A model generated the notes under the pieces. That model did no database searches and had not been told where the DNA came from. It worked only from the letters and a program-made list of their open reading frames with translations. Positions 2,327 through 50,325 of a DNA stretch of 50,325 bases are shown here, one piece after another (within the stretch, counting starts at the first letter, position 1; each line of letters starts with the position of its first letter). The position numbers were made by a program, and so were the translations under genes. Location: contig MCFE01000642.1 in assembly GCA_002104905.1 (NCBI GenBank), positions 1-50,325 on the forward strand. The letters are read 5' to 3'. Origin of the DNA: Basidiobolus meristosporus CBS 931.73 (Eukaryota > Fungi > Basidiobolomycota).

Positions 2327-2517
2327 CCCAGAACATAGAATTACTCAGAGTTGTCCAAGCAGCCCCAAACTTTGGACACATGTCCTTGGGACCTTCCTAA
2401 GCATATTCTTTGTGTTTGTCTTGCCAAGACCATGTAAAAGTATAAATATTACATTCACATTCAATAAATGATTAAGTGGAAACCACATAATCCACTTGTT
2501 CTCCCAAACTCTTACAA
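2327..2517 (+). mobile_element. Ty1/copia LTR fragment (sense; same family as 42279-42557)
   Basis: gttgtccaagcagccccaaa...gccaagaccatgtaaaagtataaat...ccacataatccacttgt...actcttacaa matches 42367-42557. Confidence 0.75.
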
Positions 2518-3141
2518 TTGGAGGGAGCCAGGTCCGTAAGCCAGGTTCCAAATGGCAAAGTAAATGTCAAGATCTAGGTATAATACAAAATGTACAACGG
2601 AGTGCACATCTGTGTATTCAATCTACCAATGGTGGCATTTGTAATAGTGTAGTATATTAAGCTGATAGAAGTCAAGTAGAGAGAACTCTCCAGAGATTGG
2701 GTTGATGGCATTTCCAGAGTTAAACAGATCGATGTAGAAGGGCCAGCAATACAAATCAAGATTTAGATAGCCTTTCATTTTAAGTTTTATAAGATGGGCG
2801 AGGATAACATGCAGATATCAACCAAATTTCTCATATGTGATCATTTCAAACAAGCTAATCAATCAGCTATCTCTACTGGAATGCGTAAATTTGGATGGTA
2901 TAGTTATTATCATTGCGTAATAATTGGCAATATTACTAATGAATCGATTTTGGGCAAATGGATGGGATTTCAGGATGTGAACTATGTTCATAAATGGGAA
3001 TTCGAGTGGGTTTTTTCATCGGCTTATTTCTAAGCAGGCTGGGCAGGAATGGAAACCGGCTCACACGTGATCTGAGGATTTACCTGCGGAATGGGAAAAT
3101 TACTCTACTTTAACCTGGTCCGTAAAGGAGAAAACTTCAAT

Positions 3142-4672
3142 ATGCAGGCACTCCGTCTCACCCAGAATCTCACGTCACTACGTACACCTTTTCTCAGAGG
3201 ATGCTCGACAAGGTTCAGAAACCTTCGAGAGAAGTCCACTACCAGCGGTAGCTCCACCGCGGAAATCACCACTCTGGGTAACGGGATTCGCGTGGCCACC
3301 GAAAATACTCCAGGCCATTTTTCAGCAGTGGGCGTGTATGTGGATGCCGGCTCACGGTACGAAACGGAGGAAACCAGGGGTGTCAGCCACCTGCTAGACA
3401 GAATCGCTTTCAAAGTGAGTGACTGCTTTGTTGGAAGGTCTTTAGACCCGCCGTTTATTAACCAGGTTGTCGTATTGAACCATTTAGAGTACCGCTAACA
3501 AAAGCACCGAAGAAATCACTTCCGAATTGGAGGCCTTGGGTGGAAATGTGATGTGTTCTAGTTCGCGCGAGTGCATGATGTATCAAGCCTCCATTTTCAA
3601 CCAAGATCTGGAGCGAGTGGTATCTCTGTTCTCCGAGGTGGTGCAGAACCCCATCATTGACCCCCAGGAGTTGGATGAACAGCGACAATCAACATTCTAC
3701 GAGATCTCCGATATCTGGTCAAAGCCAGAATCGATTCTTCCCGAACTACTGCACATAACTGCTTACAAGAACAATACATTGGGGAACCCATTGCTCTGCC
3801 CGGAGAAGAACCTCGTCTCAATGACCCCTGAGACTATAAAGAAATATCTTCACCAGTGGTACACCCCCGAGCGGATTGTTGTCGCCGCTGCCGGTGCTCC
3901 CCACGATGAAGTATGTCGCTTGGCGGAGAAGTACTTCGGAAATATGAAGCAGAAGGCACCCGAGGAGCCATCCAAGCTAGCCAGTCTTTTTGGCAAGAAA
4001 TCTCCGGCTGACGAGAAAGCCAAATACACCGGAGGGACTCTCATGCGTGAAAACCTGGAGCTTCCATTTACAAACGTATACCTAGGCTTCGAGGGTGTCT
4101 CCATCCACGATCCTGATGTCTACCCCTTGGCCACTCTCCAGATCCTCATGGGAGGTGGTAGCTCGTTCTCCGCTGGTGGGCCAGGCAAGGGAATGTACTC
4201 ACGATTCTATACCAACATTCTGAACCAGCACTACTGGGTGGAATCCTGCCAATCTTTCAATCACTGCTACACGGACTCTGGACTCTTTGGTGTTGCGGCA
4301 TCCTGCCGTCCCGAATACAATCAGCATCTGATCTACTTCGTTGGACAGGAGCTGGAGCTCATCACCCGAACCGGGCGTGGGGGCATCTCCGAGGTGGAGA
4401 TGAACAGAGCCAAAAACCAGCTCAAGAGTAGCTTGCTAATGAATTTGGAAAGCCGCATGATCCAGCTGGAAGATCTTGGGCGTCAGGTGCAGATTCGGGG
4501 TCACAAGGTCGAGGCGGAGGAGATGTGTGACCTTATTGATCAGGTTACGCTAGCGGACCTGTGTCGCGTCGCCAACCGAGTTCTGAAGGACGGCAAGGGA
4601 GACATCACCTTTGTTGCTGAAGGAAACCTCACCGGACTGAACGATTACAAGAAACTACTTAAATTGCCCTGA
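3142..4672 (+). CDS. MAS2: Mitochondrial processing peptidase alpha subunit (M16 family); exons 3142-3414 and 3488-4672
   Basis: Arg/Ser/Thr-rich presequence, [46 protein letters not shown], glycine-rich loop [18 protein letters not shown]. Intron GTGAGT...TTTAG restores the frame. Confidence 0.95.
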
Positions 4673-39505: not shown

Positions 39506-40138
39506 CTAATATCTGTGTCTGCCATAGTATCTGATCTTGTAGTGACGACAGCCATACCCACTGTACTTCTTGTAGGGTCTGCCGCATCTGTGGGGGAAGT
39601 ACTGAGGAATGATGACCTGGGACTGTACCGGTTGGGCTGGTTGGTACAAGGTCTGGTCGAGGTGTTGGGCCTGATCGAACTGGTTCGACTTGGAGAGGGC
39701 TCCACTCTCTTGGGCTGAGTATCCGCGCATCTCATCCATGAGTGCCCGCTTTGGCTGCATCCCAAACATGGCCATGTTCATATCCATATCCATATCCATA
39801 TCCATATCCATTGTCATGGGAGTGTCTTTGTAGCTTTGCATCTCCATTGGGGTCGGGTTTTCCTCCATGGAAGTGTCTTCTGGCTGCTCCATCATCTGGT
39901 AGCGGTGACGCTCTGGCATTGTCATCATCATCATTGGCATCTGCTCTGACTCCATGTACTTTGGGGACCTGTGTGACTTGTATCTCATTGAGCATGAGCC
40001 GGACTGATACCTGCAAGCTGAAGTCTGGTAGGTGGTCTTGGCCACCGCGCTAACTCCAGTAGCAAGGTTATGCATTGGGGCGGCCAATGCGGACTGGATC
40101 AGGATGTATGAGGAGAGCAGAGAGAAGGTCAGTTGCAT
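39506..40138 (-). CDS. Secreted Met-rich family, copy E (210 aa)
   Basis: Intact ORF with the longest (MD)n tract, PHRCGRP variant, ending ...YYGRHRY. Confidence 0.8.
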   Translation of the reverse strand: MQLTFSLLSSYILIQSALAAPMHNLATGVSAVAKTTYQTSACRYQSGSCSMRYKSHRSPKYMESEQMPMMMMTMPERHRYQMMEQPEDTSMEENPTPMEMQSYKDTPMTMDMDMDMDMDMNMAMFGMQPKRALMDEMRGYSAQESGALSKSNQFDQAQHLDQTLYQPAQPVQSQVIIPQYFPHRCGRPYKKYSGYGCRHYKIRYYGRHRY

Positions 40139-40799
40139 GGTTAGGCTGGAGTAGATCAGAAGTTGGATGAGAGATGGTAAGATCAAAGCAGTCATTTTAT
40201 AGAAATCTAGCCTCATCAAGCAAGCTTTTCATGTGAGGGGGAGTATGATAGCATGGCGACAGATTGCTCAATAGGCACATTTGGTTAATTATACTTGCGT
40301 GGTGGGATAGGTGATTGCATAGGGGCAATAATTCAACTTAGATCTACCAAACTACTTTTTTTGGTTGAAAAAAGCATTTAGGATATTGCCGCATAGTATA
40401 TGCCAAAAATACTCACTCCATGCTTTTGGCCCATTGACTTCCGGCTTTACCCACTTATCTGCATAGACAACATTCCAGACTGCCTACAGGTATCCCCATG
40501 AGAAATCTCACAGTTGGAATTCATTGGATTTTTAGCTGGTATTCTGATGGTATTTTGCTGGTATTCAGCTGGAGTTTCTGCATCACATTTCCAGTTGCAA
40601 TTTTTGGCGGAAGCACTGGGAAGCTGATTTTCAAATATGGTATGAATACAAGTAAGCCTAGTCTTCCCCTGGAAAGGATACTTGCTTGCCTGCTGTGAAG
40701 CTAGTACATGATACAGTGAGAGTTGTCACTCATTGGAAAGTTGGATTTCAGCTGATATTATGATGGTATTCTGCTGGCCTTTTCTTAGTTTTTTCTCTT

Positions 40800-41400
40800 A
40801 GGGATATGTCAACCAGTCTCATATATGTGGTTTACTCTGAGTCAAGAGTTTGGTATCAATTTTGTGTCTGTGGCAGTAATAATCAGGTTAGGATGCAGGC
40901 GTTGTACCAAAGGTTGACAAAGGCCACAAAATGTACTAAGTTGTATATTTCATCTGAATATTTTGCCAATACTGGCATGTATCTCATTGCCAGCAAGTCT
41001 GGATATTTTCTCCAAGTATTCACTATTGGGGCTTACCTTGAGTATTTTACCAAGATACTATATACTCAGCACCTATGAAGTAATTAAGCTGTTGCATAGC
41101 CTTCAAAATCTTCATGAATATTCTTGGGCCCCTCAAATATCTACAAGTATCTGGTGTAATCATCAATAGATGTGATCAACTACTTTTCTATACCAAGGGA
41201 TAAGTTTGTATAGACTGACATTGATTTGAGTCACAAGTATTAGAGATCAGAATATACACTAACTGATCTATGCCCAAGTAAAGAAGCTGAGAAAAGGTGT
41301 GCACAATACTATCATAATAATAGCTGAATTCCAAGTGTCCCAAATCTGACAGCTCTCAACATCTCAGATACTAGTTGTTGGGGAGACTAGTAGACAAATC
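40800..41400 (-). mobile_element. Highly degenerate Ty1/copia integrase relic (antisense)
   Basis: Minus-strand fragments resembling GHL, LVYSDL and TSIDDYTRY, with many stops and CpG depletion. Confidence 0.5.
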
Positions 41401-41599
41401 TTTCAAGCAGAGACTAGGCCAGCTAGCATATATGCAAATTTGGTAATCAGCTGCTCCCTATGTTCATCAAGAATTGCAACTGAAAACAGAAAGGACAAAC
41501 ACCAGCTGATTACCAGCAGAGTACTATTAGTATACCAGCAGGATACACACTAAAAGTCAGATGCATTTCAAGTCTGAGATTTTCAAAGGGTACACTCCA

Positions 41600-41845
41600 T
41601 CATATCTGGAAGCCAGTATATATAACTGAAGTAAGGAAGCTTCAGTGCTTTAGCACAAAAGATTAAAACTCATCAGCTTGAATATTTGAGAAAAATGATC
41701 CAAAATTAGTTAGTTTGTGAAGTAAAAATCAATCTTCCAGTTAACCTGGAGCACTGAGAAACTTGTATATATTAGAAATAAGCTGTACAACTGTTCAAGA
41801 GTTTGATGTTAATTAAAGGTAAGAAAAACCCAAGTCTAGTTCACA
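41600..41845 (+). mobile_element. Older copia GAG-pre-integrase fragment
   Basis: Aligns by eye with 43771-44005 (gaagcca...gctttrgcaca...gtaaaaat...ttcaagag...tagttcac) but is more decayed. Confidence 0.55.
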
Positions 41846-41925
41846 GTAAGCTTTGTAGAGCTATGCAACATTTGTTGTTAAAGTTTGTAATTCCACCTAG
41901 ATATTCACCTAGCTTAATCACTTAG

Positions 41926-42273
41926 TGTTGTAAGAGTCTTGGAGATATTGGAAGTGATTGGGAGAGCAAGTAGATTATGAGGTTTTTACTGAATGCTTTA
42001 TTCAATGTAAAAGTAGTATTTATATGTTTACATGGTTTTGGCATAAAGAACAGATAGAGTAGGTTAAGGAAAGTCCCAAGAGCATGTGTGCAAAGATTGG
42101 GGCTGTAGGAACAACTTTGAGAACTTTGATGTTCTGGGTGTTTGGCATTTGGTGAAAATATTCTAAGTAAATCCCAACCAGGAATTTGGTCAGTATTCTC
42201 TAGGATTTGAAGGTAATGATCTAAGCTACTAAGTTAGGTGAGTATATAGGTGGAATTACAAATTTTAACAACA
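41926..42273 (-). mobile_element. Solo LTR (348 bp) inserted antisense into the 5' LTR of a same-family element
   Basis: TG...CA ends, reverse-complement match to the host LTR, perfect 5-bp target-site duplication CTTAG at 41921-41925 and 42274-42278. Confidence 0.9.
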
Positions 42274-42557
42274 CTTAGATCACTACCTTCAGATCCTAGA
42301 GAATACTGACCAAATTCCTGGTTGGGATTTACTCAGAATATTTGCTCAGAACATGAAAATCACATAGGTTGTCCAAACAGCCCCAAATTTTGCACACATG
42401 TTCTTGCAACCTTCCTTAACCTATTCTACATGTTTGTAATGCCAAGACCATGTAAAAGTATAAATACTACTTTTACATTCAATAAATCATTAAGTGAAAA
42501 CCACATAATCTACTTGTCCTCCCAATCACTTCCCATATCCCCAAGACTCTTACAACA

Positions 42558-42567
42558 GGTTATGAGC
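42558..42567 (+). promoter_or_regulatory. Primer-binding site of the copia/Ty5 type (tRNA-iMet anticodon-stem half primer)
   Basis: GGTTATGAGC immediately after the LTR end ...ACAACA, as in Ty5 and Drosophila copia. Confidence 0.8.
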
Positions 42568-45106
42568 TCCAGCTGTCACTCTCTGCAATGTTTACTACTG
42601 CTATTACTGGAATTTTTCCCTCTGCTGAAAAGTTGGATGGATCTAACTACCAAGTGTGGAAGGTGAAGATGAAGATGCTGCTAAAGGAAAGGGGCCTATA
42701 GGATATTGTGATGGGAGAAGAATGCCCTCCTAAAAATGTGGGAGAGAAATCCTTAAAGTGCCAGAAGAAAGAACAAAGTGCCTTTAACTGTATTTGCCAT
42801 AATGTCAAAGACAAATTGCTAATTCAATGCTCAAGAGCAAAAACAGCAAAGAATGCTTGGAAGGCACATACCAGTCATGTTCAGCTGCCAAGAAAATCTA
42901 TCTTAGACAAAAATTCTTTACTACAAAGAAGCTGCCAGGAGTAGAAATTAAAATTCTAATTAACAGAATTATTCTGCTGGTGGATGAGATGGGATCTATG
43001 TGCACACCAACCACTGATGAGGATATTATAGTAATCATCATGAGTAGCCTGACAGACAAGCTTCAGGGCCTTGTATCAGCCCTAGAGTCCAGAACTGTTG
43101 ATTAGACCTTAAATTACATATAAGGAAGGCTACTGGATGAAGATTTAAAAAAACCAAGTGCCAGTAAGAAGGAAGAAGAAAATGCATTTATAAGCAATGA
43201 TAACCAACAAAGGAGATACCCAAGACCTTTTAAAGGCAGTAGCAACCTGTTTTGCAACTGCTGCAAAAGGAAAAGACTCACATCAGATCAGTGCTTGAAA
43301 AAGAGATAGTCTGCTGAAAAAGCCTGATTATGGAAATGCTGCAACAACTGAAGATGGATTTTTCAGATCTGCATTAAATATGACCGCAAACAAGGATTCT
43401 CAGTAGTGGTATGTTGACTCTGGAGCATCTCAACACCTCATGTACCAAAAAGTACTTTTTACCCATTATCAAGAAATTCTATTTGAGAAGGTTTTCATGA
43501 GTGACAGTAGAACAGTTGATTCAGTGGGAGAAGGAACCATCCAAGTAAGCCTTTGAAGCAGTGAAGGAAGCCGTACACTCACCTTTAAACAAGTACTCTA
43601 TGTATCAGAAATAGCCAACAACCTACCATCTGTAAGCAAGGCCACAGTAGAAGGACTCAGTTTCAACTCTGACAATTCTGGATGCAGGATCACTGATCAA
43701 AATGGTGCTCATATTGCTTTGGGTATCAGAGATCAGAATCTGTATAGGTTGACTTATATTCCATCATATCCGGAAGCCAATATAAGTAGCTTAAGTAAAG
43801 AAACACCAATGCTTTGGCACAGGAGATTTGGACACATCAATTTGATTATTTGCGCAAAATGTTGAAAGATCAGCTAATTTCTGGAGTAAAAATTGATCCC
43901 CCAGCTAAATTGAAGCAATGTCAAGCCTGCAAATATGGGAAACAAGCCAGACAACCATTCAAGAGCTCTGGGTTAATCAAAACTAAGAAAAAATTAGATC
44001 TAATTCACTTAGATATGTTTAGACCTATGCAAATTTATCCTTAGGCAGCATGACATATTTAATTACCTTGACTGATGGTTATACAAGAAACACATGGGTC
44101 TACTTCATGAAAAGAAAGGATGAAGCTCTGTCTAAGTTATCTAAAGTTTGCAATCTTTTGTATAACCTTAACAACTGATACATTTTGAGTAGCCCATGTT
44201 TGTGCATTCAGTGATTTCATGCCTAGAGAAGGGTTGTGAACACAATTGTGTCTTAATATCTATGCTAACACTTGGTGTAAGGGATTACTCACTGATGTTA
44301 TCAGACACAAGCCATCATCACTCAGAATTCAGAAATTATGGAATTAAGAAAGTAAATATTAATTGTATGTATTTCCATGGTATAGACAAGTGGCAACATA
44401 TGTAAGTGCAAAACAAATATTGCAAGTTTGCATATTCCCTTTATTAGTAAAATACCTCTACATAGTATATTAAATGTAGGAACAAAGCCCACACATATGT
44501 AAGGATAGCCTTAGATATAAAGCATTATTGGATATCCTAAGAAAGCTACCTTTTAGGCTAAGATAGTGACCAATATCTGCCATATTAGGAGACCTCTGGA
44601 ATAATGTGAATCTATAAGAGCTTCAGAGTTTAGACCAACAGAACAATGAACAAAATACAAATACAGAAGTACTTCAGGAAATCAGCAATCAATCCTTACC
44701 AAGCACCAACAAAACTAATATTTACAGTATGCCCAATGTACTGCCAAGTACTGATTTACAAACAAACCAGTTATGCATCTGCTTTGCAAAGTGTACTCGA
44801 GAGGATTATTAGTCCTGTTTGAATTGAGGATCCTGATGCATTACAAGGAGTTTTAGTGCGGACTTGATTAGCATTATTTGAAAATTTGGTAATGCAAAGT
44901 AGAGCAGATTGCAGATCAATAGAGTCTGCACATGGGATACCCAAGTGGTGATCACATATGTGCAACAAGTCATTGCAGATGATGTAGTCTTTGCTCAGAG
45001 TGCTACAGAGGCGTTACAAGAACACTACATCTATATATACTCGGTCTTGGAAGTAGGAACATCCGTAAATACACAACTTTGTTCTATCTTTCAACTAGCC
45101 TACCAG

Positions 45107-46900
45107 ATGAGACATACTGATATCAACAGTGGTTGCACTGCTTTTAGTAGAATACCAGAGACTAATCGCAAAGATCAGCTTCACATTGACCCATTTGACA
45201 AATATCTATGTGCCCAAAGTGAGCACAAGCTGAGGGAAAAAGGGCTAATATCACCTCTGGGTTTCTCGTCATTGGTTGTGCCAGTACGTGCGCAACTAGG
45301 GGATGACGCCTTGATGTCAGCTGCCGAGTTCGGCATCCGCCAGATTGTCACGTTGGGTGTAGGACTGGATTCACGAGCATTTCGATTAGTGCTTCCTTCG
45401 GATCTGGTCTTCTTCGAGATGGATACCCCAGAACAAATAAAGGTGAGTACCGACCGTATAGTTGGAGATAAGCTGAAGTCGACCTGTTGTAGAATCAGTG
45501 TGGCTGTCGACCTTACCCAAGACTGGGCAACCTCCTTGCGTGATGCTGGCTTCAATACTCAAAAGAGTAGTTTGTGGATTATTGAGGAATTTCTTCCCTA
45601 TTTGGATAAGGCAACTGTAGATAACTTGCTTAGAACTGCACGGGACCTATCTGCGCCTGGAAGCCGACTGTGGTGCGATCATATTCACCCAGACATCTTA
45701 GCCTCAGCTGAATATGCGCCACTTAAAGCAAGCCCTGACAAATCGAGGGTTCGCTCGTGCAGCACGTGGGCAAATCCAACCTGGGAGCTGGAAAGAAATG
45801 GATGGAATGGCCATGCATGGTTGCTCAATGATCTTACTAGCACATGGCCTGAGAATCCGCCACCCTTATGGATGTCACCCATTCCGGACACTTTCGACAC
45901 CTGCTTTCACTGGATAATCTTTGCGACGGTAAGCGAAGCTGAATCCTCAATGCCAAGCAATACACAGAGGATACACGAAATGTGCCGGGGCTTGAAAGAA
46001 ACTCCAAAGAATCTACCCATCAAGTTTATTTATGACTCCTACGGCAGCATGCTCTTCGAAGCAGTAACCCGGGTGCCTAGCTACTATATAAGTCATGCTG
46101 AATGTGAGATTCTTACTCGTTACATTTCAAGCATTGGCCAAGACATCCATCCCCGCTCCCTTGTTGAGCTTGGTTCTGGTAATTCTATAAAAACCCAAAT
46201 AGTATTGGACTTCTACCACAAAGTGAGGTCTCCTTTGCATTACATTGCAATGGATATCAGCTCCGAGGCTCTGAGAAATGGCGTCGATTCGCTAAGCTCC
46301 AAATATGCTGGTCTCGATATAAAGACAATAGTGGGCGACTTTGACGGCGCCGTCAAACTGAACATCATCAATAGACCTGCACTTATCACGTGCTTTGGAA
46401 GCACTATCGGAAATCAATTACCTGAGCAACGTCATAACATGCTGTCCCAAATCTGGGCTCAGATGCACCATGGAGATGCCCTTCTTTTGGGTGTGGATCT
46501 GGTCAAGGATACGCAAGGCATGGTTTCTGCCTATCAGGACCAGAATGGGACCCTAGCTGCCTTTTGTAAGAATGGCTTGACCGTCCTCAACTATGAACTA
46601 GGAGCTGACTTCAAGTTGGAGTCTTTTGAGCACGTTACCACCTGGAACTCACAGCTTCGGCGGGTTGAGAATTGCCTCTTGGCGTGTCATCCTCAAACTA
46701 TTACTCTCTCCAAGCCAAAGACAACGGTGTCTTTTGCGAAAAAAGAGCCGCTGACAGTTGGAATATCGTACAAGTTCTCCCAAGAAAGCCTGCGCTCTGA
46801 GCTCAGAGCCGCTGGGTTCGACCTAACAAGATGGTGGACTGACGCACAGGGTTGCTACGCAATTGCTCTGAGTTTCCCTGTCCAGCCCCCCACATTTTAA
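45107..46900 (+). CDS. Intronless fusion: LCM/Rv0731c-like SAM O-methyltransferase plus EgtD-like (Methyltransf_33) amino-acid N-methyltransferase, about 597 aa
   Basis: N-domain DPFD, GIRQIVTLGVGLDSRAFRL, FFEMDTP, VAVDLTQDW...AGF, LSAPGSRL. C-domain PKNLPIKFIYD..GSMLFE, YY...E.EIL, LVELGSGNSIKT, MDIS, GSTIGN, LLLGVDLVKD, LGADF, SYKF, WWTD. ATG chosen downstream of a TATATA at ~45030. Confidence 0.85.
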   Translation: MRHTDINSGCTAFSRIPETNRKDQLHIDPFDKYLCAQSEHKLREKGLISPLGFSSLVVPVRAQLGDDALMSAAEFGIRQIVTLGVGLDSRAFRLVLPSDLVFFEMDTPEQIKVSTDRIVGDKLKSTCCRISVAVDLTQDWATSLRDAGFNTQKSSLWIIEEFLPYLDKATVDNLLRTARDLSAPGSRLWCDHIHPDILASAEYAPLKASPDKSRVRSCSTWANPTWELERNGWNGHAWLLNDLTSTWPENPPPLWMSPIPDTFDTCFHWIIFATVSEAESSMPSNTQRIHEMCRGLKETPKNLPIKFIYDSYGSMLFEAVTRVPSYYISHAECEILTRYISSIGQDIHPRSLVELGSGNSIKTQIVLDFYHKVRSPLHYIAMDISSEALRNGVDSLSSKYAGLDIKTIVGDFDGAVKLNIINRPALITCFGSTIGNQLPEQRHNMLSQIWAQMHHGDALLLGVDLVKDTQGMVSAYQDQNGTLAAFCKNGLTVLNYELGADFKLESFEHVTTWNSQLRRVENCLLACHPQTITLSKPKTTVSFAKKEPLTVGISYKFSQESLRSELRAAGFDLTRWWTDAQGCYAIALSFPVQPPTF

Positions 46901-46926
46901 GAATAAACATCCACAAAGTTGCGATT

Positions 46927-47017
46927 ACTCTTGAATATATGCATCCAACTGCACTCTGGAATATATGCATCCAACTGCACTCTTGAATATATGCATCCAA
47001 CTGCACTCTTGAATATA
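46927..47017. repeat. 26-bp tandem repeat, about 3.4 units (ttgaatatatgcatccaactgcactc)
   Basis: Units start at 46931, 46957 and 46983, with a partial unit at 47009. One mismatch in unit 2. No spacers. Confidence 0.92.
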
Positions 47018-47215: not shown

Positions 47216-48308
47216 TTACACTCGTTGAACAGCTACATATGCGCTCATCAAATATTCATCCTCCGAGCTGGCATAGTACAAGCGTAACTTGCGGAAGTAT
47301 TCATCTACAAAGTGAACCATTATGGCTTCATTTGCAAAGACCTGGCGTTTCTTCAAACCGGCTAGTATTTGTGGGTAACATGCCGCTTCCATTATATCCA
47401 TTCCAGCCTCTCCCTTGTTGAAAGGCTCCGTAAATATGCGCTCAGCGTAGCTCACCAAACGTAGAGTAGGAACAAGGCTCAAGGCCCGATAGATGTCTTC
47501 CTTTGATCTACAGAAAACTGCGACGCTTGTGGTATCAAGGAGCTTAGGATTAATGTTGGCCTCATTGATGTGGTGTTGCCAAATATCATCCATACGCTTC
47601 AGACAATCATAGCGCTGTATCACGGAAGTTACAAGGTGACCTCCAATTGACAGCTCAGCTGAACGACTGGCAAAATATGAGACTAACTCTCGATGGCCTT
47701 CGTCGCGAATCAGGTTGGCTTGAGAAGCATTAATCTCAGCTGACGCAAAGGTTAATGGACGATCCATAGTCACCGGAATAGTATGTAGCCAATGAACACT
47801 ATTAAAGCAGACACCTAGGTCAATGCTTCCACTTGGCACACACTGCGTGAAGAAAGACTTAGCACTGAGCATGGTTAATACATCCACCGCCGGGCTACCA
47901 GTGATAAAAGTATGATTTAGGTAGGACAAATCGGGATTGTCCAAGCACTTCAGCAGCTCTCCAAAGTCGTTATTTGGAAGATCGTTATGGTAGACATGGA
48001 TTGTTAAGTGTTTGTTGCCCTCCAATTCCTGAAGGGAACTCAGGATGCCATTCACCACAGCCATGGAATTGGCCCCATGGCTACATCCATAGTCCCCAAT
48101 AGTGAATGTTGTTTTTGTATTGCGAGGCACTGCAGACAGTTCTTTCATCAATGCTTGAGCTATCAACAGTCAAAGAAAGTCTGTACTTACCTAGCTTCTT
48201 CAACACTGAGATTCCATGCTCATTCATCTGAGCCTGTAGCGAGGAGCTTTTGTTATAGCTCATCATTGGTTGGATCATGGAGTCACACGTTGTGAAATCT
48301 GGTATCAT
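47216..48308 (-). CDS. SABATH-family (Methyltransf_7) carboxyl/N-methyltransferase; putative 31-nt intron at 48160-48190
   Basis: SYNKSSSLQ, IGDYGCSHGANS, YHNDLPNNDF, KSFFTQCVPSGSIDL, NSVHWL, FASRSAELSIGGHLV. The start could be 48308 or 48266. Confidence 0.85.
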
Positions 48309-49079
48309 CTTGTCTTCTCTCTTCTGGCTTATTTTCGAAAGTCATCAAACAGTTCAACCCGAGCTTTTCTTAAGTATCATCCTAGAATCTAATCACATGT
48401 CACTGCTACTGATCTACTATGCAGCAGTGGAAGATGATCTGGTGCGGCTCTAACAATGTGTTGGATTGCTGAGTCGATGTTACGCGATTGCCTTTCAAGT
48501 GCTTTATCCTGCATGATTTAGTAAATACCAATTACCACTAATCGTCTATTCCACACGAGTGACCAATGCTGCTGTAAATCTTCAGAATTAGCATGCAATC
48601 TATACAGCTATTAGGCAGATGTGAGTAATTGCGGCTGCTCACTATGCGTGTTACTCCATTGATTTGTAAAACTCCCTCTATGGTTGGTGTTGAATATTAG
48701 TTTCTTAGTCCTCCTGGTTGGCGGTTATTGTATCCAAGTTAAACAGGTTATTCCTGTAATATGTATAAAATCATACAGCTCATAGTCTCAGTTGTGCAAT
48801 ATTGCAAGTGTAGCATGTGCTTTGAGTGCACCTGTAATGGGCTGTTGCAGCACTATTGAGGCTTATTTGGTTGCTTGAGCAAAGACTAAGAATTAGCCAA
48901 CCTGGGCTACTCTTTCTGGCAGCTCAACAAGTTGCTTAGGATCTAATTGTATTCAGTACGCAAGATTGCAGTATTGATCTAATACTCATAATATGCAATA
49001 CACCATTCAGAACCAGTAGGCTGTGTTAGTTGTGCAACAAAGGTTGGTAACAGTGGTATTAGTGGGATGAGCTATCTGA

Positions 49080-50325
49080 TACTATAGCTTAGCTTTTCTA
49101 GCCCATGGGTAGCTCAGTTGCCTGAAATACTAGTTCAACTATGGTCAGCAAGTTATCTTGGCCATCATTCATTTTAGTGAAGGGGAAGACAGCCATTGAC
49201 CAATAGAATCTTTCTCTCAGTTGAAATAAAGATGCCAGCACCACTGTAATAGCTCTGATATAACAGTATGTAGCTGAGAGGAACTAGTAGGTAGGTTAAT
49301 AAGAAGAAATGTTAACTCTTCTGTGCTTCAGGCATTGTTTAGTGGGAGTAAGAGTGGCTGCAATGGTTTATCAACATCATTGTTAGAGGGTACATGAATT
49401 GGACTAATACTTATCATAAGGGAAGTGTAGGGGGAGGGAGAGCCACAAGGTTGGTGAAGTCCTTATTTGCTAGTAAGAGCTAATCAAAGTGCAAACAAAG
49501 AAGCCAGTCAAGAGGTAGAGAACCTCTTTAATAAGTAATTTAATTTATATCTTGACTCATGTCTAATGGTGGTGTCAATAAAGTAAAGTTCTGGAAGCGT
49601 AAATATGAAATACAAGAGTCTTTGGGGAGTACAAATTGTAAATGTTTCATATCAATATAATCTAAGACTGGCACCCAACCTGGTATCAGGTGTAGTAGGG
49701 ATGGTGTGTGGACTTCTAGGTAACTCTGCCACATTGATCTCAGATGGTCCTGTGCTACTAACCTAAGTTTTTCAGCTTTAGGGGAGGGAAAGTCACCAAG
49801 TTGGTGAAATCTTTATTTGAGTTAAGAACTAATCTAAGTACAAATAAAGAAGCCAATTAAGAGGTCTAGAACCTCTCTAATAAGTAATCTAATTTATGTT
49901 TTGTTTCATCTCTAATGTTTATTTCAACAAAGTAAAGCTCATCAGGGGTAAATATAAAATTCAAGGGTTTTGGGGAAGTACAAATTGTAGATGTTTCTGA
50001 TCAATGTAATCCAAGACTGGAACCCAGCCTGGGATTAGGTGCAGTAGGAAAGGTGTGTGGACTTGTAAGTAGCTCTGCCACATAGATCTTAGATGGTCCT
50101 GAGCCAGTAGTCTTGGTTTCTCAGCTTTTTGAAGTTTTGAAGCAAGCTCTGTTACTACGGCAGAGCCAACCTGGGTGTGCCAGCAAGAAGATTTCAGGGA
50201 GGAGTTAGATTGAAGCCATTGTTTGATGGAGGGATTATGTGATTTCTGAAGTTTGACTAGGAAGGAAGCACGGAGATAGACCATTTGGATTTGGTATGGG
50301 TAGAACCCAAAGGCTCCATTAGTTG
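49080..50325 (-). mobile_element. Degenerate non-LTR retrotransposon (LINE) ORF2 C-terminal region, running off the window end
   Basis: NGAFGFYPYQIQMVYLRASFLVKL resembles the post-RT GGLG...AL..W..KL segment. A decayed zf-RVT-like SCTL*...TI lies near 49360-49410. Strong CpG depletion. Confidence 0.5.
49430..50130. repeat. Diverged tandem duplication of about 350 bp inside the LINE relic
   Basis: 49430-49780 and 49781-50130 align (aagttggtgaa...gaacctct.taataagtaat...gtacaaattgta.atgttt...ggtgtgtggactt...agatggtcctg). Confidence 0.85.

Follow-up and report, generated by a model that had tools for sequence, protein, structure and literature searches.

How could two methyltransferases of bacterial type come to lie in one uninterrupted reading frame of a fungal genome, and what might the joined enzyme make? 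The question is raised by a gene of the frog-gut fungus Basidiobolus meristosporus CBS 931.73 found in the 50,325 bp of contig MCFE01000642.1 (GenBank assembly GCA_002104905.1) that were analysed here as a whole and are called the window below. On the plus strand an open frame extends from 44909 to 46900, its first ATG is at 45107, and from there 597 codons follow without interruption, a length that by our arithmetic has a chance of about 1e-13 at 48% GC. The start at 45107 is favored by the alignment, in which M1 coincides with M1 of Streptomyces LCM proteins. In an earlier reading of the letters alone (the sequence-only reading), this gene was described as a continuous open reading frame (ORF) joining an LCM/Rv0731c-type methyltransferase to an EgtD-type domain; the Pfam and NCBIfam matches confirm that description, and the peptides that it named (LGADFKLESFEHVTTWN, SYKF, and WWTD) are all present in the translation. 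The gene and its parts are as follows (aa, amino acids).

45107-46900, plus strand: complete fusion gene, 597 aa, TAA stop codon at 46898-46900, delimited by the ORF and the profile matches.
45107-45928, plus strand: N-terminal half (aa 1-274), LCM-fold, OPCMT-like putative small-molecule carboxyl methyltransferase.
45929-45976, plus strand: linker (aa 275-290), positioned where the bacterial genes have the stop codon, the spacer, and the second-cistron start.
45977-46870, plus strand: C-terminal half (aa 291-588), Methyltransf_33/EgtD-type putative alpha-amino-acid N-methyltransferase.
46250-46900, plus strand: public gene model P0125 (216 aa), equal to aa 382-597 and starting at the internal Met382.

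Since the public model begins at an internal methionine and has no binding motif for S-adenosylmethionine (SAM) in its 216 aa, compared to the 597 aa supported by homology, the public annotation is, on this comparison, a truncated call of the same fusion gene. In the N-terminal half, Pfam LCM (PF04072) is matched at aa 11-177 (E 9.5e-33) and NCBIfam TIGR00027 is matched with 145.6 bits, above its cutoff of 93.55; the sequence matches ML2640 (E 1.5e-32) and Rv0731c (E 3e-31), and the fold search agrees. In the C-terminal half, Pfam Methyltransf_33 (PF10017) is matched at aa 291-588 (E 5e-87, profile positions 4-301 of 304), the alignment with Mycobacterium smegmatis EgtD has an E value of 5e-61, and the similarity to EgtD structures reaches a template modelling (TM) score of 0.9 at 38% identity. 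The NCBIfam egtD model TIGR03438 gives 270.7 bits, which is below its equivalog cutoff of 290.9, and the fungal EasF model TIGR03439 gives 175.9 bits.

The sequence-only reading knew of no described LCM+EgtD fusion, and this was upheld by the searches. When 1.84 billion representative proteins were searched in full with HMMER, the sole other protein with both domains was P0001 of Basidiobolus ranarum (47-48% identity), and the truncated model P0125 was retrieved as well; no further LCM+Methyltransf_33 fusion was detected in a word-index search, no cluster with the fusion in the ESM Atlas, and only four weak LCM proteins, none of them a fusion, in a word search with the LCM part scored within the full-length range. 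Egt1, EasF, and Psilocybe TrpM are fungal proteins in which a Methyltransf_33 domain likewise acts on derivatives of His or Trp. They differ from the window protein in the partner domain (Egt1 consists of Methyltransf_33, DinB_2, and sulfoxide synthase), and the window protein scores much higher with the bacterial EgtD model and groups with Streptomyces; by Pfam only LCM and Methyltransf_33 were found in it, and not the DinB_2 plus FGE-sulfatase sulfoxide synthase of the Egt1 type. Judged by its sequence, the gene is a new domain architecture made from known families via a known kind of event, with a predicted chemistry. The best eukaryotic matches to the window protein are two B. ranarum paralogues:

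Contig JASJQH010009005.1 (L001), 275-1825: fusion gene P0001, with the LCM half truncated at the 5' end.
Contig JASJQH010008732.1 (L004), 2404-3366: stand-alone EgtD-like gene P0126, whose homology begins exactly at the junction.

Outside Basidiobolus, both halves lead to a small, uncharacterised two-gene cassette in Streptomyces. The closest sequences to the C-terminal half are in Streptomyces cluster P0127 (44% identity, 258 bits; the next match has 217 bits), and the closest to the N-terminal half is Streptomyces P0128 (45% identity over aa 5-274, 247 bits); matched with the LCM half, the S. syringium protein reaches 255 bits and that of S. uncialis 245 bits, followed by mycobacterial TIGR00027 proteins at 106 bits. 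In approximately ten Streptomyces species (S. jumonjinensis, S. netropsis, S. syringium, S. uncialis, and Streptomyces sp. NPDC049906 among them) an LCM gene precedes a Methyltransf_33 gene, with 31-36 bp between them and in the same order as in the fusion. The LCM gene of S. jumonjinensis (L002) and of Streptomyces sp. NPDC049906 (L003) encodes 279 aa and the Methyltransf_33 gene on the same strand 328-336 aa; the called genes are separated by 31 and 33 bp, respectively, and a convergent LuxR-type regulator comes next. When one genome per bacterial species was scanned with the LCM-half alignment, 80 loci were found; seven, all from Streptomyces, show 41-46% identity and the rest at most 38% over partial lengths. 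An EgtD-like gene lies directly downstream in these seven as well as in L002 and L003 (nine loci), and within 4 kb downstream in none of the other 73 LCM loci. In five of the nine (L003/L010, L006, L007, and L011) the LCM gene ends with a single TGA and the frame continues without other stops into the Methyltransf_33 cistron, so that one substitution would create the fungal architecture.

The cassette and the window protein have both enzymes and their order in common, as well as an identity of 42-46% over the two halves, an Asn/Gly signature at positions 252 and 282 of the EgtD-like enzyme (see below), and a C-terminal extension of the LCM protein (WCDH.HPD, NPP..WM, HW.I.A). In the cassette, however, there are two proteins, a stop codon and a spacer of 31-36 bp, 70% GC, and the convergent LuxR-type regulator, whereas the fungal gene has 48% GC and encodes one 597-aa protein with Leu for Thr213 (EgtD numbering), and Glu for Gly190 and Asn for Thr20 (ML2640c numbering).

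Phylogenetic trees of the two halves are congruent. In the LCM tree (105 rows) the window protein and the B. ranarum fragment form a group (89) that is sister to the cassette LCM clade (94), the join having a Shimodaira-Hasegawa-like approximate likelihood ratio (SH-aLRT) support of 97, and the next relatives are LCM proteins of other Streptomyces, Micromonospora, and Nonomuraea. In the careful Methyltransf_33 tree (53 rows), in which the bootstrap had not fully settled, Basidiobolus (100/99) is sister to the cassette clade (100/100) with 93/75 at the join, and a quick tree of 92 rows agrees. The horizontal acquisition and the actinobacterial look proposed for both halves in the sequence-only reading are thus borne out by score ranking, trees, gene order, and the active-site substitutions in common.

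The base composition of the ORF (47.9% GC, 49% GC at third codon positions, GC3) is far from that of the cassette (70% GC, GC3 76%), yet both halves are equally close to Streptomyces (45% and 43% identity); equal identity after a full shift to the host level argues for long purifying selection on both halves. The host-like GC content and the location on a 50-kb fungal contig next to a copia remnant and a spliced gene point to an old bacterium-to-fungus transfer followed by fusion, and not to contamination. Among the three Basidiobolus copies the pairwise identities are only 47-51%, which places the transfer before old duplications in the genus. In Basidiobolus 2-5% of the genes are candidates for horizontal gene transfer, 61% of the candidates are intron-less, and their composition is host-like (Tabima et al. 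2020, PMC7466969). Fusions after transfer are often seen in early-diverging fungi, and fused domains were reported in 100 of 829 xenologs (Ciach et al., bioRxiv 10.1101/2021.12.02.471044). The Basidiobolus fusion belongs to the same general phenomenon as these two reports, with the difference from the published fusions that both fused parts are foreign and derived from one operon, and that extant loci display the one-stop-codon intermediate.

We propose that the ancestor of the fusion gene was a two-gene actinobacterial cassette, in which an OPCMT-like carboxyl methyltransferase gene was followed by that of an EgtD-like N-methyltransferase. A Basidiobolus ancestor would have acquired this cassette by horizontal transfer, and the inter-cistron stop codon and spacer would then have been lost to give a single reading frame, whose single mRNA would let a eukaryote express both enzymes. 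As for the mechanism, the C-terminal half would bind an L-amino acid via its carboxylate and alpha-amine in the way of EgtD, but with the pocket remodelled to hold a bulkier aromatic side chain, that of Tyr or Trp instead of His, and carry the methylation of the amine as far as the betaine. The N-terminal half would then methylate a carboxylate, most simply that of the same betaine, to produce a permanently cationic methyl ester. The origin from an actinobacterial cassette and the fusion are, by the sequence comparisons, very probable. Taken together, cassette origin, transfer, fusion, and mechanism are in our opinion the best explanation of the locus, and a likely one.

The substrate proposed for the C-terminal half is derived from residues mapped by alignment to M. 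smegmatis EgtD and checked on 92 sequences. The residues Tyr56, Asn166, Tyr206, and Ser284, which bind the carboxylate and alpha-amine of the substrate (roles as in PMC8593015), are retained as Y326, N436, Y476, and S554, and so are Tyr39, Phe47, and Gly161 (Y309 and F317 being among the residues kept in this half). The histidine-pocket residues T213/M252/E282 are replaced by L483/N522/G552, whereas T/M/E is found in 55 of the 92 relatives. The combination N252+G282 is limited among the 92 sequences to the Streptomyces cassette (T/N/G) and to the window protein and P0001 (L/N/G); the pocket of P0126 is M/S/G. Exchanges at positions 252 and 282 are known to turn the enzyme from histidine to a bulkier aromatic substrate (Vit et al. 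2015, cited in PMC9103826), and PDB entry 4PIP is entitled 'Engineered EgtD variant EgtD-M252V,E282A in complex with tryptophan and SAH'. Because the backbone-binding residues are kept while the pocket is changed at the switch positions of 4PIP, we read the EgtD-like half as a putative enzyme for the alpha-N-methylation of an aromatic amino acid, most likely Tyr or Trp, and the conserved Asn at position 252 could bond a phenol or indole group. This half is probably not histidine-specific and not a hercynine synthase. In comparison with mycobacterial EgtD (PDB 4PIM, 4UY6) and the 4PIP variant, the fold, the SAM site, and the four backbone-binding residues are in common; the L/N/G pocket, the lack of an ergothioneine context, and the fused second methyltransferase are the differences.

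Another departure from the histidine pocket was noticed elsewhere in the family. A long-branched bacterial Methyltransf_33 protein, P0247 (pocket P/H/A), is encoded in an operon (L085-L087, 4994-9930) with an SfmD-type peroxidase, a DAO-family oxidase, and BcGHD/DUF2264. The SfmD-type peroxidase family is known for hydroxylating a methyl-tyrosine. The operon seems to be a further case in which an EgtD-like enzyme serves a substrate other than histidine, perhaps a tyrosine derivative, and by analogy its context gives a weak hint of an aromatic substrate for the EgtD-like half of the fusion.

The N-terminal half resembles ML2640c and Rv0731c, small-molecule carboxyl methyltransferases for which the SAM contacts have been listed and Thr20 and Tyr/Phe194 described as landmarks (Lin et al., PNAS 2023, PMC10193983). 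Its SAM motif is LGVGLDS (aa 83-89); the contacts R15, R61, G84-V-G86, D106, D135-L136, and E160 correspond to R28, R90, GxG, D135, D164-L165, and E189 of ML2640c, and the landmark Tyr194 is retained as Y165. The OPCMT-like enzymes (ML2640c, Rv0731c, MnMT4; PMC10193983) share with the window protein the LCM fold, the SAM contacts other than Gly190, Tyr194, and a TIGR00027 score above the cutoff. They differ in that the identity is only ~30%, that the window protein has a distinct C-terminal region of 90 aa, Asn for Thr20, and Glu for Gly190, and that the known members use hydrophobic acids (steroid side-chain acids) and not amino-acid betaines.

The order of the two reactions is suggested by the intact carboxylate-binding site of the EgtD-like half, because of which N-methylation would have to come before esterification. 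Since the cassette pairs an amino-acid N-methyltransferase with a carboxyl methyltransferase, N-methylation followed by esterification of the same molecule would be the most economical reading. The sequence-only reading had proposed two-step N- plus O-methylation to an amino-acid betaine methyl ester, and this agrees with what is known about both families. An aromatic amino-acid betaine that is then methyl-esterified would be the likeliest product, although as a suggestion it is tentative. More tentative again is the proposal that fusion and cassette constitute a self-contained two-enzyme pathway to N,N,N-trimethyl aromatic amino-acid methyl esters (e.g. tyrosine-betaine or hypaphorine methyl ester), captured from an actinomycete by a gut-dwelling fungus. 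To our knowledge, the methyl esters of N,N,N-trimethylated aromatic amino acids are a class without known biosynthesis.

In the AlphaFold2 model of the fusion protein (19-row alignment; mean predicted local distance difference test, pLDDT, 77; predicted template modelling score, pTM, 0.57) the pLDDT is 80-95 in the C-terminal half, 60-90 in the LCM core, and below 50 in the first 52 residues and in the linker at aa 278-283. Alignments of 99 and 63 rows were discarded, as LCM rows had been misplaced onto the Methyltransf_33 half (11-16% identity). We read the model as two predicted folded domains on a flexible tether, with no confidence in their mutual orientation. A complex prediction with the LCM and Methyltransf_33 proteins of S. 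jumonjinensis had a score of 0.00 and is evidence neither way.

Several observations weigh against the proposed history and product, and those concerning the LCM half favor the alternative that only the EgtD-like half works, the LCM half being an inert or structural remnant on the way to being lost and the protein a plain aromatic amino-acid betaine synthase. The window protein has N7 in place of Thr20 (with Ser8 adjacent) and E161 in place of the SAM-contact Gly190, while the Streptomyces partners retain both residues and B. ranarum retains Gly190. In both B. ranarum paralogues the LCM half is lost or degraded: P0001 is without the first ~85 LCM residues and has stops upstream, and its Gly-rich motif VGLDSRAFR is changed to VQLDVRTFR; upstream of P0126 no LCM remnant was found on L004 (both contigs are only 4-5 kb long). 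Because of these replacements and losses, the LCM activity may be dispensable or gone, and the role of the LCM half may be waning in the genus. The LCM match is also broken in one Streptomyces cassette, that of Streptomyces sp. UNOB3_S3 (L011, 4001-4593), where it is in two pieces (aa 57-119 and 155-276) without the N-terminus and the downstream Methyltransf_33 gene is intact, possibly a bacterial parallel to the loss in B. ranarum. We nevertheless regard an inert LCM half in the window protein as unlikely: it is a complete, full-length open frame, 45% identical to Streptomyces and on par with the other half in conservation, all the SAM contacts listed above and Y165 are retained, and a neutral sequence would not stay open through a complete remodelling of its base composition.

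The same gathering of contrary points includes the linker and the annotation, from which it might be argued that the expressed product is not the continuous frame, i.e. that a mini-intron of 29 nt (45929-45957) or separate transcripts yield two proteins as in bacteria. The linker carries GTAAGC at 45929; with the AG at 45956-7 it would form a frameshifting intron of 29 nt, and with the AG at 45966-7 an in-frame intron of 39 nt. Splicing of the former would end an LCM-only protein within a few codons and leave Met292, which coincides with the start position of the bacterial second cistron, near the start of the second enzyme. A linker mini-intron is conceivable, since an intron of 31 nt is annotated in the adjoining gene, and the public annotation covers only the last 216 aa of the ORF, the 3' part. 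On the other side, splicing of 39 nt would still retain the fusion, P0001 of B. ranarum has both halves in one frame via a different and shorter linker, eukaryotic ribosomes seldom reach a second cistron, and the public model, which starts from Met382 and has no SAM motif, resembles a prediction error and not transcript evidence; we consider a split product improbable. A further GTGAGT at 45443 was dropped as an intron donor, the stretch being aligned with bacterial protein. Still less probable is a genuine histidine methyltransferase (hercynine synthase) for ergothioneine fused to an accessory domain: EgtD is indeed the best-scoring named family, but the score is under the equivalog cutoff, the pocket residues are L/N/G instead of the prevailing T/M/E, and neither egtB, egtC, and egtE homologues nor a sulfoxide synthase domain were found beside the window gene or in the Streptomyces cassette loci. 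Concerning the origin, the sister grouping of Basidiobolus and cassette in the Methyltransf_33 tree has moderate support, which is strengthened by the congruence of the two halves and by the gene order and active-site signature in common. Of the nesting within bacteria expected in the sequence-only reading, the placement of both halves among bacterial clades stands; Basidiobolus is sister to, and not nested in, the sampled Streptomyces clade, and the donor is thus best described, from the trees, as an actinomycete with the cassette, not necessarily of a sampled species. The Methyltransf_33 tree contains no labelled fungal Egt1 or EasF sequences, so that the case against a fungal origin rests on score ranking, NCBIfam scores, and the all-bacterial tree neighborhoods. 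A vertical or fungal origin, with Streptomyces receiving and splitting the gene, would be compatible with the unrooted tree, in which the direction depends on the outgroup distribution alone; bacterial contamination of the contig would be a further alternative. Both are scarcely credible, because among the matches listed the 120 LCM relatives and the neighboring clades in both trees are bacterial where identifiable, and mostly actinobacterial, the LCM (OPCMT-like) family is overwhelmingly actinobacterial (PMC10193983), the cassette is spread across approximately ten Streptomyces species with a conserved LuxR-type neighbor, and the window has fungal GC content, a copia element, and spliced genes.

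If the proposed transfer, fusion, and two-step methylation are correct, a gut fungus would possess a single bifunctional N,O-methyltransferase welded from a captured actinomycete pathway, and the locus would be an unusually clean case of how a bacterial operon can be put to use by a eukaryote: in present-day Streptomyces loci a single stop lies in the common frame of the two cistrons, and the fungal gene is in effect the read-through product. A new betaine-ester metabolite might then occur in both the gut fungus and soil actinomycetes, and the B. ranarum paralogues, one with a decayed LCM half and one with none, would offer a natural series on the need for the second step. Besides the fusion itself, this work adds the donor-type operon with its one-stop-codon intermediate, the correction of the gene model from 216 to 597 aa, the evidence for a non-histidine substrate, and the B. 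ranarum paralogue series.

The remaining features in the surroundings of the fusion gene are the following.

42498-44175, plus strand: decayed Ty1/copia element, with DUF4219, Retrotran_gag, gag_pre-integrs, and rve fragments broken by stops.
45032-45039, plus strand: possible TATA box TATATATA, 68-75 bp before the ATG, proposed from the letters alone.
46902-46907, plus strand: possible polyadenylation signal AATAAA directly after the stop codon, proposed on the same basis.
47216-48308, minus strand: SABATH-type Methyltransf_7 gene, tail to tail with the fusion gene at a distance of 315 bp.

The sequence-only reading had placed the fusion gene in transposable-element debris with CpG retained in the ORF and depleted in the flanks. 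The debris is present upstream, in the form of the decayed Ty1/copia element; downstream there is an ordinary spliced gene. The CpG contrast was measured as described: the ORF has an observed/expected ratio of 0.65, as against 0.07-0.14 over the preceding 4 kb and 0.20 at 48167-50325. As a sign of transfer it did not hold, for the ratio is 0.68 in the downstream neighbor gene and 0.87-1.0 in the other genes of the window. CpG retention was dropped as an indication of foreign origin, because an ORF equal to its neighbor and below the other genes is marked only as not being a decayed repeat, i.e. the ratio only separates genes from methylated or decayed repeats. In the copia region, and over 40000-45100 generally, the CpG ratio is 0.06-0.14 and the GC content ~37%, and the stretches 1-2000 and 48167-50325 are similar, which suggests a methylation-driven C-to-T decay of repeats in this genome.

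The SABATH gene consists of exon 1 (48308-48191), an intron of 31 nt (48190-48160, GTAAGT...GATAG), and exon 2 (48159-47216), in agreement with the public model of 353 aa. Its best solved relative in an exon-by-exon search is the mycobacterial fatty-acid O-methyltransferase 5F2K, and both known families of small-molecule carboxyl methyltransferases thus adjoin at this locus. The gene was dropped as a part of the transferred cassette, since neither the Streptomyces loci nor the two B. ranarum contigs contain it. In the spacer between the two convergent methyltransferase genes, just past the AATAAA, a 26-bp unit (ACTCTTGAATATATGCATCCAACTGC) is repeated in 3.5 copies with 96% identity (46927-47017).

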